A stretch of 64,000 nucleotides of DNA, taken from the NCBI RefSeq assembly GCF_006345805.1, contig NC_043004.1, positions 77,252,001-77,316,000 on the forward strand, in the 5' to 3' direction. The stretch is from Octopus sinensis (lineage: Eukaryota). The notes under the pieces were generated by a model. The model had not been told where the DNA came from, made no database searches, and saw only the letters and a list, made by a program, of their open reading frames with translations. The translations under genes were made by a program, and so were the position numbers. This document shows, piece by piece, positions 978 to 35,247 of this stretch (within the stretch, counting starts at the first letter, position 1; each line of letters begins with the position of its first letter).

Positions 978-1051
978 CTGCTGGGAGCACCAATAACAAG
1001 AGGGTGATGCCGAAATACAACTTCCACATTTCGTATGAACCTTGCAAAAGT
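978..1051 (-). CDS. Exon encoding the N-terminal half of a PSI domain, integrin-beta-like; last exon of this gene inside the window
   Basis: Acceptor ttaatttttacag, donor CAG|GTATAT, 74 nt, phase 1 in and phase 0 out. Reads (D)FCKVHTKCGSCISASPSCYWCSQQ, the C-x4-C-x2-C-x5-C-x-W-C pattern of integrin beta PSI domains. Confidence 0.8.
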
Positions 1052-2431
1052 CTGTAAAAATTAAATGGCATAAGGAATTACCGTCTATAGATTTCAGTCA
1101 GTTCGTAACATTTAAATACTCTCACTTTTACGATTTGCCAAACTGTAAACTCTTATAAATTATCATTCTTTCTAATTTTCTATAAATACTGTAATGATAC
1201 TCTATAAAATGTAGTTTTACATTTCCAGTATTTATATCTACACTCTGTTTTGATTTCTGATCATCATGGTTCTTAGTTCCAGATTGAATTATAAATAAAG
1301 TAATATCTTCGTGAACTATAGATTACTGTGAGAAGTGAAGAATCTGGCGTTTCGGGCTGTCATCCGAAACAGAGGAAGAGAAAGAGAGATAAAGAGATAC
1401 TATTGCTTGGATTGTGAACAAGAAAGTAGTAAATGATGAAGAAACTGAAGTAACGATGATTGGACGATGGTAGAATGAAATAATGCCACCAGTCAAACAA
1501 TAAAAAGGTGATATTTTAGATAAGGGAGTCAACGGAGGAAACTATTAAGTAAAGGGAGAAAACAAAGAATAAACTCGTGTAGAAAAGATATTTGGGAAAA
1601 AAGCGCCAAAGAATCCTGCTTATAATAGAGCTTATGTAAGTTTATCGACTGAAATGTTAACAGTTCTTTCTCACCAGTAGCAAAGCCCCCCTAAGTATCT
1701 CATACCTAATTCTGACTCTCACATCAACTACTTCTCCGAAAGAATGAAATAGAAGTCATTAAAGAGAATGTGAGAGAGTTGTTTTCTGGCTAGTGAGTGC
1801 ATCATCAGGTATGCTTGTCGTATCACGGCCTAAAATATTTTCCTCCATGTTATTCGACGTTAACGTGTCAGCTTATCTTCATGATCAGCAATGGTCACTC
1901 AACCTACTCATCAAAGATGGAAAATCTTTATATCACATCCTAACGACTTAATTAAAGAATATATTTGAAAATGTATTTTCTGATATGAAAATGACGTATA
2001 TAGTTAGTACTTCCACTGTCAACAGTTGAATGTCATGAGTTAGCGAGTTATCAATGTTTTGGCCACAATTTATGTCAATCAAGACATAATCTCTCCACAA
2101 CAGATGAGCTGAAACGGGATACTTCAACACGATATGAACCGCTGGATCTTTGGACGATGATATTATAGCTGAAACTTTGTTTAGTACGCAACGGAATGAT
2201 AATTAAAACTGCTAGATGTAGGAAAGAGGAAAGGCAAAGATATCAAATAAAAGCTAATGCCTGTGATTTCAGAGATGAAGACTATCAATGTTGCTATATA
2301 TTTAGAGATACGCATCAAAGTCATAATTGCATAATTAAGTGCATCTTCTTACATATTCAATTTTCAAATATAATGCTGTTTTGTGTTTTATAACTTAATG
2401 TTTGTAGAATGACAAACGTATGTTTACTCAC

Positions 2432-2500
2432 CTGATATTTCTGAATCCATAAAATTACTAATGTTTTCATCAAAAGATTCTTGAATTGTACTTGAAAAAT
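2432..2500 (-). CDS. Symmetric phase-1 exon (69 nt) of the mucin-stalk/PSI gene
   Basis: Acceptor gattccttctttag, donor CAG|GTGAGT. Open frame FSSTIQESFDENISNFMDSEIS. Confidence 0.75.
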
Positions 2501-2946
2501 CTAAAGAAGGAATCGCAGATTATATATAATCTGTAAATAACTATGTACACGAAAATTATACAAATATACTTAACAAGCATATATTTAGTTTCGCTGTGAA
2601 AATATAGAATATATAAAAGTCACAGCAACTTCAGCAGGAAAACATGATCATCGCTTTTCATTAAAGATTAGTTGGGAATCGCTTACTTTGGTTTCTGTCT
2701 ATTGAGGTTAAGAGGAGATCTTGTGAATATTATAAGCAAATTAATACAAGCAAAGAAACTCACATATTGGCTAATGCCCAGGATTTGATACCAAAAGTAC
2801 TAATACAGCATATTTATGAGTATGCATGTTTGAATATTATAAATAGATCTATTCCTTTAGCAAATGCAAAGGAAGATAAACGATCGCTGCTGAATTTTTT
2901 GTGAAAGGCAAACAAGTCAGAATGATCCATCTTACTGTGTTTGCTG

Positions 2947-3211
2947 TTTCTGTTGGGCAAACGGTCTTCGTCCCAGAGCTCGCAAGATGGGAGAAGTCCG
3001 AAACGTGGTCCTTTGCTATTCGTAAGACCCGCAGAAAAGAAAGCAGGTCAACCCCCGACACCGAGAGCATCGACGGATGGATGAATGCGCATCCAGGCTC
3101 AGCGGTTGCGTAGGAAATCGGGGACAAGAAACAGGAAGAAAGAGTGAGAGAAAGTTGGGGCGAAAGAGTACAACAGGGGTCGCCACCACCCTCTGTCGGA
3201 GCCTCGTGGAG
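2947..3211 (+). mobile_element. 5'-truncated RTE-like LINE 3' end with a 16-bp target-site duplication
   Basis: TSD cttactgtgtttgctg at 2931-2946 and 3212-3227. Its last ~90 nt (aaacaggaag...gagcctcgtgga) are shared with the SINE at 53218-53492. No poly(A). Confidence 0.6.
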
Positions 3212-3421
3212 CTTACTGTGTTTGCTGAAAACCAAGTGGGTTATCTTTGAGGATATTTTCACGGCGAAAGTAGATATATGATTATTAATGTTATATAAGC
3301 AATTCTTCATAACCTGTAGAAGTTAACAGAAACAGAGTAACAAGAACAGAGGAAATAATTTGGATTATGCATAGTGATTATCATCATCAACAGTATTATT
3401 ATTATTACTATTATTATTATT

Positions 3422-32367: not shown

Positions 32368-33582
32368 CAAGGTGTTCAAGATACATTTGACAGTTTGCAT
32401 TAAAAGTAAAGAAAACATATTGTTCCATTAAAAAATAAATGTATTTTAAAAAATCAAAACATATCAACTGGATTATGATTGGGAGAGAACAGAGTATTGA
32501 AAGTAGTACCACGGTCTCAAGATGGCTCCGAAACGTGATGTGTGCCTTGGAAGATCTTTGAACACTTTTTATCTTGGCCACCAGTTTAGAATTGGTCTTG
32601 CAGGAAGAATGGTTGGTGTCTTTCTCAACTGCATCCCATACATAATAATTCATGGGATTACAATCAGAAACATTAGGAGGCCAGAAATTTGGGTTGATGA
32701 AGTAACAGAAATTCTCTGACAACCACTTCTGACTGTTTCCGGAGATGTGATAACGAGCCAAATCTTGCTGCCTCACATATGGCCTTCCAGTAGCAACCCA
32801 CTCCAGCCAGGGACTAACCACAATTTTCTACAGGTTTACGAAGCCTTCTGATTTTAGTCTAAATCCCGGTGCAAAGTTGTGGAGCGGCATGGTGTCACCC
32901 TCACTGGAGACACATCCAAAGACGATCGCAATTTGGGGGAACTTGGTTAACATGATATATGGGACATCACATGTAGTGCAGGCAAGCCACCTGTTTTTCT
33001 GGGTGTTGAGCAACTGGTCCTGACAGAATTTTTCATCTGCGAAGAACCAGATTATCCCCGGCTCAACAAGATACCTCAGCTTGTTTGAGAGTTTCTTTGC
33101 CTCCATCAAGCGGTTCTCCTTCGCCTCGGTTGTTAGAATTTGTCTCTGGCACCGTTTGTACGAGTGGTAGCAAAGGTCCTCATTCAGGGCCAGGTTCATG
33201 GTGGCGACTCCAACACACATTTCTCTCGCCAAAGCCCGGATTTCTTTACTTGGATCTTCCATCACCTTGCCTAGCAGTTATTGGAGGGGTTCCGGTCTGT
33301 GGATGCATTCAGAACATCTGGTACATCCCTTCCTGTTGGCAACGGCATCGTAGTCTCCGATGCAGATGTCCATGTCACATCTTACAATGTCTACAGGGCA
33401 TTGAGCAGCAGTCATGTAGATACATGGCGCGCCGATAGCTTTTCCAGCATTCAGATGGCTTTCAGTCCTTCATATTAGTTACATTTTTCTCAACTATAGC
33501 CGTTGACTGTTCATCAACACATCAAGCTCTTCCTGAAAGAAAACAGGACACAAAAACTGTCAAATTTATCCCGAACACCCTG
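32368..33582 (-). mobile_element. Decayed Tc1/mariner-superfamily transposon, DD37D (maT) type, 1215 bp
   Basis: 29-bp imperfect TIRs at 32368-32396 and 33554-33582, left TA intact. Transposase motifs WFFADEK, QQD and WPPN-S-D-NP; 37 residues between the second D and the third position, which is mutated to N. Confidence 0.85.
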
Positions 33583-33929
33583 AATGATGCCCCTGCTCCT
33601 CCCTTGTTCATGACTCCTCCACTCAGGCACTCCTGACTCATTCCCCTCTACTACTGTCAATACCCTTGTTAAATCCAATTCGTGAAGTCCTTCCGTCGCA
33701 GAACGTTTACTTATGTCCTTCCTGTAGGTGTTAACTTATATTCGTTCACGAGAAACATCAATAGCCTCAACCTTTACAGTCTAAGAGGGCCTGCGGAGAC
33801 CATGGGTACTACGCTTTCCCTCATACACAGCAAGATTTATGTATGTATGTATGTATGTATGTATGTATGTATGTATGTATGTATGTATGTATGTATGTAT
33901 GTATGTATGTATGTATGTATGTATGTCTC

Positions 33930-34340
33930 TTGTCAGGTCATTTTCGAGTGCTACTGGTAACATTTAACCCAGTACAACCTGTTGCATGGTCGGGTCGTCG
34001 GCGACTAAACCGGCAACCCCACCAAGCTTGCTTGCTGAGGAGGGTGTTTATTGGACACCTTGCGGGATGAAAAACAAAACCCGTCAAAGAGCGGAAGAAT
34101 TCTTGAGAGTCAACGGCCATCCAATAAATGTCTTAAGGCTGTATCATGCGCGGGGACATAGAAATAATCGGATTGAATACCCGATCGCGCGGTTAAACCA
34201 TTGGGAGTGAAGGACTCCTAGCCTTTGTTAGGGCATCCCCCTAGGAGACGGTAACTCAGGTAACTGGGATAACTCCGACATAAACCTGCTGCTCAGTGGT
34301 TACCGATGATGTTGACTTGTTCTTCTTTTCGGATTATGAC
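33930..34340 (+). mobile_element. Possible RTE-like 5' UTR fragment
   Basis: GC-richer block after (TATG)n with ctaggagacggtaactc...ataaacc and ttcggattatg, reminiscent of RTE 5' UTRs; no coding support. Confidence 0.3.
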
Positions 34341-35186
34341 TGCTGTTGTTTAGTGAGTGAGATTGACTCAGTGCACAGCCTTTCCTCACTTTAAAAAAAA
34401 TCTTCTTGCACAGGCATTGCATGATAACAACATTGATCAAGCTTCGTGCAATGGTCATACTCGATAACGAGGGGGCAGCCACCATGTATGTATATACGCA
34501 CATGCATGTATGTACGTACGCACGCACGTATTTATGTATGCATGTATGTGTGTATGTATATATGTATGCATTCATGCATGGATATTTTAGTTGTTTTCAG
34601 TGACGGGTAAAAATAGGAATTCATGAAAATATGCACTTCTCAAAGTAGATTGGTTCTCAGTGGAATCGAAATGAAGAGATGCTTGACCACGTCCAGATTT
34701 TACTGCTGTGCCAAAAAGATGCTCTCCTGCTGCAATAACAGTTGCATTGCTACGAAACAACTACGCTAACTTTGCCGCTAAAGTATACTTTTTAGTACAA
34801 ATATTAGTGCAAATAATATTGTAAACATATTAGTACAAATAATGATAATAATAATAATAATAATAATAATAATAATAATAATAATAATAATAATAATAAT
34901 AATAATAATAATAATAATAATGAAATTATTGTATACAGTGCCCAGGTGCACCATAACTTGTCAAAAGTGCGTATAAAGCATATGCAGTAATGTCTGGGAA
35001 GTGAACAGTGTATGAGTCAGATAGATGCTTGCGTGTGTATGGAGGGCAGAAAATCAGGTGTAGTGTTGCCGAATCTCCGGAAGAATGTGAGTTTTGGTTG
35101 TTAAGAATAGCAAAATATCTGAAATTTGAATCTGGCAGTCACGAAATAATTGTTTATAGATTCGAAAGAAGAATATTAAAACTTAC

Positions 35187-35247
35187 CTGAAGTGAAACTC
35201 TGCATTGTTTTAATAATCAAAAGTAGAGTAAACACGAACTTCAACAT
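35187..35247 (-). CDS. First coding exon (signal peptide) of the mucin-stalk/PSI gene
   Basis: caaacATG at 35247; reads MLKFVFTLLLIIKTMQSFTS plus 1 nt (basic N-terminus, 9-residue hydrophobic core); consensus donor CAG|GTAAGT in phase 1. Confidence 0.75.

Follow-up and report, generated by a model that had tools for sequence, protein, structure and literature searches.

Few metazoan receptors are as conserved in their architecture as the integrin β subunits. Their N-terminus is formed by the PSI domain, located at the knee of the β leg; the knee region moves in activation and carries activation-reporting antibody epitopes. Canonical β subunits, such as vertebrate β1, Drosophila βPS, C. elegans PAT-3 and Haliotis XP_048243651.1, have the same order of domains, namely PSI, hybrid, β-I, hybrid, four I-EGF, β-tail, transmembrane (TM) segment and cytoplasmic tail, and as mature proteins they normally begin directly with the PSI domain. 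Variable extracellular segments are known from CD45 (PTPRC) and CD44: exons A, B and C of the former and the variant exons of the latter are short and symmetric, and encode O-glycosylated segments rich in serine and threonine (S/T-rich). Those of CD45 come directly behind the signal peptide. In both receptors, the reading frame is kept whether such an exon is included or skipped, and the length and charge of the protein change accordingly. Here, we analyze a stretch of 64,000 nucleotides from Octopus sinensis (C8:77252001-77316000, in the following "the window"; the genome searched comprises 2.72 Gb). According to a first-pass annotation, its minus strand hides the beginning of an integrin-β-like gene with a mucin-like N-terminal extension. 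Judged from the sequence, it is probable that the window contains the 5' half of a real, divergent integrin β gene, in which eight symmetric phase-1 exons encode a tail of about 224 residues in front of the PSI domain.

The exon chain and the integrin β gene

The chain consists of ten exons. In the following list, donors and acceptors are ranked among all GT and AG sites of the region by the scoring described further below.

Exon 1 (coding part), 35187..35247, minus strand: 61 nt; ATG and signal peptide MLKFVFTLLLIIKTMQSFTS; ends in phase 1; donor GTAAGT, top 0.1% of GT sites.
Exon 2, 26332..26613, minus strand: 282 nt is likelier (276 nt if 26332-26607); donor GTAAGT, top 0.44%.
Exon 3, 23298..23336, minus strand: 39 nt, phase 1-1, QTSPEVEDKQSST; donor top 0.9%, acceptor top 10%; single copy in the genome.
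Exon 4, 20276..20332, minus strand: 57 nt (75 nt if it starts at 20350), phase 1-1, SPSESEVISTTSKQSSIYL; donor top 0.3%, acceptor top 28%.
Exon 5, 13012..13074, minus strand: 63 nt, phase 1-1, HKATSESAVVSVSVKENSTHQ; donor top 0.7%, acceptor top 0.6%.
Exon 6, 10588..10644, minus strand: 57 nt, phase 1-1, PTTKLTTMPLKNTEAEFSG; donor top 0.8%, acceptor AAATAAATTTAG at the 55th percentile.
Exon 7, 9092..9142, minus strand: 51 nt, phase 1-1, SGSISDMVYGNETSTFL; donor top 0.1%, acceptor top 3.4%.
Exon 8, 4858..4911, minus strand: 54 nt, phase 1-1, STQWFGAFVNNKIHPTTE; donor top 0.3%, acceptor top 0.06%.
Exon 9, 2432..2500, minus strand: 69 nt, phase 1-1, YFSSTIQESFDENISNFMDSEIS; donor GTGAGT; acceptor top 2.1%.
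Exon 10, 978..1051, minus strand: 74 nt; starts in phase 1 and ends in phase 0; encodes the first half of the PSI domain, DFCKVHTKCGSCISASPSCYWCSQQ; donor GTATAT.

The splice signals proposed by the first-pass annotation were found at these positions: an AG precedes each of exons 2-10 and a GT follows all ten exons, the donor being exactly GTAAGT in eight cases out of ten (the exceptions are exons 9 and 10). When joined, the exons give 801 nt without a stop codon, and the translation agrees with the annotated peptide letter for letter. The length of all eight internal exons is a multiple of 3; each of them is in phase 1-1 and open in the phase-1 frame, which for exons 2, 4 and 6 is the only open one. 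Exon-skipped variants of the model keep an open frame, and introns within the chain reach up to 8.6 kb. Exon 1 has an A at position -3 before the ATG; nowhere else on the window's minus strand is there a credible exon combining a methionine, a hydrophobic core and a phase-1 donor. The scan for signal-peptide exons was run with a low-complexity filter, removing ATGT microsatellites; between positions 1052 and 35186 of the minus strand the only other match lies inside a microsatellite. The gene is "hidden" with respect to tracks based on open reading frames (ORFs), and only to these; for annotation it matters that scans of this type overlook chains of micro-exons (39-69 nt) dispersed over 34 kb.

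To the left of the window, 20 more exons follow, from C8:77251790 down to the stop codon at C8:77215768. The next phase-0 exon, which the first-pass annotation had predicted, lies 1.2 kb left of the window and continues the PSI domain (EFDDVNHARCD...RC). This exon 11 (cag/GAATTC...AAAGAG/gtcaagt, phase 0 to 0) encodes EFDDVNHARCDVRRRLVENRCLSSSIVRPKGYFKIKE. The expected β-I exons with the metal-ion-dependent adhesion site (MIDAS) were likewise found left of the window, as were exons for the hybrid, I-EGF, β-tail, TM and cytoplasmic segments; the exon matching Pfam Integrin_beta is 14.5 kb away on the same strand. The resulting model comprises 30 coding exons with a coding sequence (CDS) of 3015 nt for 1004 aa and spans about 71.5 kb (C8:77215768-77287247); the protein length is 1004-1006 aa. 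All introns of the model are of the GT-AG type except for one GC-AG intron (CAG/GCAAGT), which follows exon 15 (C8:77245158-77245224, minus strand; ...NITLLQ). Inside this exon, 33 nt upstream of the GC donor and in phase, there is a canonical site (CGC/GTGAGT), whose use would delete 11 β-I residues; the GC donor is favoured by length-exact homology to the relative introduced below (LFTNRVSLTTNITLLQ vs PFVNQAKLTDNITLFQ). Exon 28 (C8:77219978, minus strand) has an NAGNAG tandem acceptor (tgcag/cag/G), giving either ...VKPGIPGEE... or ...VKRIPGEE....

On the full model, the following Pfam profiles were matched:

Integrin_beta, residues 345-576: 9.1e-67, 225.8 bits, profile positions 2-248 of 248.
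PSI_integrin, residues 245-288: 38.1 bits (cut-off 27).
EGF_integrin, residues 708-748: 49.3 bits.
I-EGF_1, residues 665-689: 29.1 bits.

EGF_2 also matches the model, and no match was obtained on it for Integrin_B_tail and Integrin_b_cyt. The PSI_integrin score is the outcome of a profile check suggested with the first-pass annotation, whose label of an integrin β is thus borne out by the full-length model and Pfam. In an alignment of 40 β sequences all structural cysteine columns are kept, among them the invariant PSI columns C245, C251, C254, C261, C264 and C288; here, the octopus protein is 50% identical to the relative and 30-38% identical to the other β subunits. Four cysteine-rich I-EGF repeats with conserved cysteine columns follow the hybrid domain, the β-tail cysteines align, and one TM stretch, LFIVLAVLGGILFVAIVTIFVW, is present. 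That the locus is an integrin β gene is therefore practically certain; the subunit is apparently divergent and lineage-restricted.

The divergence includes the metal sites and the cytoplasmic tail. The MIDAS reads D-C-S-V-T, i.e. DxSxT with a conservative exchange of Ser to Thr at the fifth position, and D-V-T-S-S in the relative. The Asp-Asp pair of the site adjacent to MIDAS (ADMIDAS), whose Asp is conserved to at least 90% in the 40-sequence alignment, is absent: the octopus protein has TMKGH (Gly-His) and the relative SMTPY (Pro-Tyr). The ADMIDAS is a regulatory site and not a fold-defining feature of the family. For the synergistic and ligand-associated metal-binding sites (SyMBS/LIMBS) and the other MIDAS ligands (D158, N215, D217, E220 and D251 in β3 numbering), a comparison by motif alignment only indicates that FVDR, SEDEPEAG and FSDAF retain the equivalents of the three Asp and the Glu, with Ser in place of the Asn. 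The cytoplasmic tail contains one NPRY and lacks both HDRRE and a second NxxY.

The intron in front of the PSI domain was claimed to be in phase 1 and conserved, which is corroborated by two octopus paralogues at C1:92.18 Mb and C1:146.12 Mb. Their PSI exons have the acceptor cag/GT..., start in phase 1 with 5-6 codons before the first PSI cysteine and end in phase 0 after C(S/T)KE; the borders are those of exon 10. The identity of these borders implies that the intron between signal peptide and PSI domain is ancestral and of phase 1. One may ask whether a small, secreted, S/T-rich protein is encoded by a gene of its own, made up of exons 1-5 or so, with the first exon of the integrin located elsewhere and nearer to PSI. 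The long distances in the chain, with its kilobase-sized introns, fit such an arrangement, and exons 1-7 are tied to the integrin by frame and splice signals only. However, such a gene lacks a terminal exon and a stop codon, and all of its exons end in phase 1 at a strong donor. The PSI exon, which begins in phase 1, has to be joined to a phase-1 exon upstream of it, like its counterparts in the paralogues, and the scan offered no other credible signal-peptide exon on the minus strand between 1052 and 35186. We consider a separate gene very unlikely.

Chance controls and the nature of the extension

Since picking exons for their ability to keep the frame is circular, controls were run. Counted were GTRAGT donors preceded by an AG at a distance that is a multiple of 3, the exon in between having 36 nt or more and being open in phase 1:

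Minus strand, 900-35300: 12 qualifying donors, 7 of them with a pyrimidine-rich acceptor.
200 first-order Markov shuffles: 4.0 +/- 1.9 (max 9) qualifying donors, 1.5 (max 5) with a pyrimidine-rich acceptor.
Other strand and rest of the window: 1-6 qualifying donors, 0-2 with a pyrimidine-rich acceptor.

The excess over the shuffles is about 8 exons, which is the number claimed. Additionally, position weight matrices (PWMs) for donors and acceptors were trained on 19-20 protein-homology-anchored splice sites from downstream exons of the same gene, and every GT (2067) and AG (1796) in the region was scored. Eight of the ten window donors rank in the top 1% of the GT sites, and the acceptors of exons 5, 7, 8, 9 and 10 in the top 0.06-3.4% of the AG sites. 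These data bear on the notion that the entire chain preceding the PSI exon is a fortuitous pattern in AT-rich intergenic DNA. The circular selection speaks for this notion, and base composition alone predicts about 12 occurrences of GTAAGT on each strand of 34 kb. It is contradicted by the shuffle and strand controls and by the independent PWM; moreover, the PSI exon cannot do without a phase-1 signal-peptide exon upstream of it, and a spacer is present in the orthologue as well. A chance origin of the complete chain is hardly credible.

The scores also help to define individual exon borders. For exon 2, an in-frame acceptor at 26613 (TTTATTTCAAAG directly before the exon), 6 nt upstream of the annotated one, scores 4.0 vs -2.3 at 26607 and resembles three of the anchored acceptors. 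Owing to the better score, exon 2 probably starts at 26613 and thus has 282 nt with an extra Gly-Thr. For exon 4, the in-frame acceptors 20332 and 20350 score alike (1.2 and 2.3, respectively), which makes its start ambiguous. Exon 6, for which there is no alternative acceptor, is by these sequence criteria the least certain one of the chain. Four further phase-1 candidates on the minus strand, at 20220-20270, 12299-12373, 7290-7403 and 6390-6419, have weak acceptors, are not S/T-rich and match, as far as the scores tell, the chance background.

In the model, the first PSI cysteine is residue 245. The extension, reckoned from the signal peptide to this cysteine, has about 224 residues, or 222 with the exon borders of the first-pass annotation. 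In the 222-residue version there is no cysteine, Ser and Thr make up 29.7% and Pro 8.1%, 33 Asp and Glu are opposed to 10 Lys and Arg, and three N-glycosylation sequons as well as fifteen [ST]xxP motifs occur. Exon 2, a 92-codon frame rich in P, T, E and V, contains an in-frame 18-nt repeat of 8.7 copies with 88% matches, which encodes TAEPVQ. The T and P of T-x-E-P are kept in every unit, and the Thr-x-x-Pro spacing of the repeats would suit the addition of O-GalNAc. The last 40 or so residues, encoded by exons 8-9, contain W, F and Y; this aromatic-rich segment is not mucin-like and is probably a structured lead-in. Taken together, the composition suggests that the extension is most likely a disordered, glycosylated tail. 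When the whole rough model was used for a protein search, low-complexity words from TAEPVQ dominated the result, and bacterial P/T-rich proteins only were returned; a search with the octopus-specific residues 106-304 gave no match. Five full-length variants of the model had no exact counterpart on record, and none of the searches returned a protein or transcript of this genus or a match above 50% identity, although records of the species itself and its near kin seem to be absent from the collections searched.

With respect to the origin of these exons, introns located at signal-peptide cleavage sites are known to show a general excess of phase 1 (PMC1626468). An exon residing in a phase-1 intron must be of phase 1-1 and have a length that is a multiple of 3, which accounts for the uniform phase of the chain. 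Each extension exon occurs once in the genome, and none is derived from a repeat; a genome-wide search for a donor of these exons yielded self and compositional matches only and no source for exon shuffling. The comparison of the exons with each other and of their flanks gave only microsatellite matches, which argues that they are not recent duplicates of each other. The ancestral phase-1 intron behind the signal-peptide exon may have taken up new exons, and the 18-nt unit may have been expanded in frame inside exon 2. Such a gain of exons is the most likely scenario, as it fits the intron position of the paralogues, and the locus would then exemplify how a conserved phase-1 intron after the signal peptide gathers new exons.

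An orthologue, the use of the exons, and the neighbourhood

The best database match of the octopus protein is P0004 (E 9e-121; next best 1e-84), which originates from Logan contigs of 2.7-3.7 kb (e.g. SRR29271459_95626). Its CDS is intronless, i.e. the contigs are transcript-like. The match with P0004/P0273 is reciprocal: the best places of P0004 in the octopus genome are the C8 exons in series, from PSI to TM, and exon 10 corresponds to residues 34-60 of the relative. In contig L023 (3.7 kb), no stop interrupts the frame between the called Met and an ATG farther upstream, at position 201, which is preceded by an in-frame stop; therefore, the true product of the relative has 890 aa. The 890-aa protein is also called on other contigs (P0273). 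It consists of a signal peptide MSRFYESIFCQLPAVLLAFMTLNISSGLAQ, about 90 Cys-free residues with 34% Ser and Thr, and the integrin body, with the first PSI cysteine at position 121. AlphaFold2, based on 38 homologues, assigned residues 27-104 a predicted local distance difference test (pLDDT) value of about 30 and no secondary structure, in contrast to values around 90 for the integrin body; at residues 100-121 it predicted with modest confidence a helix running into the PSI domain, which is the counterpart of exon 9 and, more widely, of the aromatic-rich end of the octopus extension. In two cluster members, which are 95% identical overall, the extension is 87.8% identical vs 97.8% for the rest, corresponding to an about five times faster evolution. 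As judged from these two sequences, such fast divergence is typical of a weakly constrained spacer.

The octopus protein and the relative have derived traits in common, namely the loss of the ADMIDAS DD and the tail ...RISVYVNP(K/R)Y...IVP(L/F)SEF. The relative's contig indicates that a pre-PSI spacer is real in this orthologue group. Ordinary β subunits lack it: for the relative's ORF, the alignments with the 150 best HMMER matches start at query position 115-125 or so, and at target residue 20-36 or so in nearly all of them, in line with the earlier statement that in canonical β subunits the PSI domain starts right after the signal peptide. This HMMER search against 1.84 billion representatives found no closer orthologue, matches being at most 39% identical; the query's own cluster representative was also missing from the result. 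Skipping within the extension was not seen in the two 5'-complete contigs of the relative (890 and 863 aa), which both have the full extension. The only isoform variation in the relative concerns the cytoplasmic tail after ...FHNVFRTM (P0273, P0004, P0275, P0274, P0278), one version having NPKY (HGFKNDNPSRISVYVNPKYEEF...) and a short one being without NPKY (GDFSWSTSVASFHPEPVIRIQF); these alternatives recall the cytoplasmic splice variants of vertebrate β subunits.

Several observations weigh against the favoured reading of a long, glycosylated tail composed of all eight exons. The PWM scores of the acceptors of exon 2 (at 26607) and exon 6 are close to the median, and about four comparable phase-1 candidates are expected by chance in the region, so that one or two of the eight exons could be false. 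The Ser and Thr content of about 30% lies under that of classical mucin domains and is borderline. The TAEPVQ units differ by 7 synonymous vs 17 non-synonymous exchanges, which is no clear signal of purifying selection. The relative's spacer has less than half the octopus length and no TAEPVQ repeats; it is also less acidic and contains less Pro. None of the octopus extension exons could be aligned significantly with it in permutation tests: exon 8 weakly resembles the relative's TTGWFSTLSDDMTLKTNE (p=0.07), and the joined exons 6-9 give p=0.25. The relative consequently validates the architecture, not the individual octopus exons.

The weak acceptors, the chance background and the differences from the relative's spacer also speak for an alternative, in which the gene does encode an integrin with a pre-PSI spacer but uses no more than a part of the internal exons. 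The extension would then be shorter and nearer to the 90 residues of the relative, being assembled, for example, from signal peptide, exons 7-9 and PSI, with exon 2, exon 6 or others representing chance AG...GTAAGT frames or rarely included exons. As all exons are symmetric, any subset keeps the frame, and the open frame cannot discriminate between the two readings. Partial use is countered by the quality of the donors, by the numbers of candidates (12) and strong candidates (7), which exceed those of all 200 shuffles, by the 92 codons of exon 2, open in one of three frames and with an in-frame 18-nt period, and by the fact that the chain exons are all S/T-rich, unlike the four extra candidates. 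We regard partial use as possible, though rather improbable, and lean towards the presence of all eight internal exons in the main isoform. It is very likely that the octopus integrin has a substantial pre-PSI extension of more than 100 aa.

The neighbourhood of the gene shows some further features. Upstream, the integrin locus is bounded by a NeuroD-family basic helix-loop-helix (bHLH) gene. It is a single ORF of 488 aa at window positions 47297-48763 on the minus strand (Pfam HLH 2.2e-19, Neuro_bHLH 2.5e-15) with long His, Pro and Gln runs, located about 12 kb upstream of the integrin ATG on the same strand. An assembly gap of 100 N is found at 36125-36224, about 0.9 kb upstream of the ATG; the promoter and 5' untranslated region is therefore incomplete. 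Introns 3 and 4 (14889-21518, minus strand) harbour 3-4 tandem partial copies of the 3' ORF of a non-LTR (long terminal repeat) retrotransposon (zf-RVT 3.5e-8), which are near-identical as protein and interleaved with (TATC)n-type microsatellites. At 32321-33277 of the minus strand, two adjacent ORFs of 168 and 149 aa look by eye like a decayed DNA-transposon transposase; no Pfam match with E<=0.001 was obtained for them.

Possible function and comparison with known systems

If the octopus gene is expressed with the complete chain, a disordered, acidic and glycosylated tail would project from the PSI domain, i.e. from the knee of the β subunit, where it would most likely act sterically as a spacer or brush. 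Such a tail could disfavour the compact bent form and shift the equilibrium between bent and extended conformations; it could also hinder lateral packing and clustering, or shield the ligand-binding head. It would sit on a subunit that has neither the inhibitory ADMIDAS Asp pair nor the membrane-proximal HDRRE clasp motif. The combination of a tail at the knee, a lost ADMIDAS and a lost clasp motif would constitute a natural experiment in the steric and allosteric control of integrin conformation.

Compared to canonical β subunits, the octopus protein shares the structural cysteines, the MIDAS Asp, the NPxY of the tail and, as far as motif alignment tells, the E220- and D251-equivalents. With its paralogues in the octopus genome it shares the phase-1 intron before PSI and the phase-0 intron within PSI. 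Unlike canonical β subunits, it has its PSI domain at residue 245 instead of about 20-36, Gly-His in the ADMIDAS, DxSxT in the MIDAS, no HDRRE and only one NPxY.

In full-text literature searches, no integrin β extended in this way was described, either in cephalopods or elsewhere. The first-pass annotation had stated that no description was known, which holds for the literature searched but not for predicted proteins, as two β subunits with analogous spacers are among these. In Lingula anatina XP_023933489.1 (P0219), a long T/S/P-rich stretch lies right before PSI, after Ig and FN3 domains. This prediction of 1594 aa includes a complete integrin β; it represents either a fusion receptor of an unusual kind or separate genes merged in the model. 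Dermacentor silvarum XP_049517771.1 (P0241) has an S/P-rich spacer of about 75 aa before PSI. Both are computational predictions, and their spacers are not homologous to the octopus extension. The idea of a pre-PSI spacer is thus not unique. An octopod entry, Argonauta hians GAB1599227.1 (P0005, "integrin beta pat-3"), is a protein of 983 aa with PSI and hybrid-like parts, many extra I-EGF repeats and no Pfam β-I match; it is a different, also atypical, β-like paralogue.

The variable exons of CD45 and CD44 offer a parallel for the gene structure. In these receptors, a phosphatase and a hyaluronan receptor, respectively, regulated splicing and glycosylation are documented, whereas the octopus exons, predicted from sequence, belong to an integrin; there is no sequence homology. 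By analogy, the eight octopus exons might be mixed according to tissue or state, tuning the length of an O-glycosylated acidic brush. We consider such regulated cassette use unlikely; if true, it would place a variable region in the style of CD45 and CD44 on an integrin, where it would sterically set adhesion strength or the threshold of activation.

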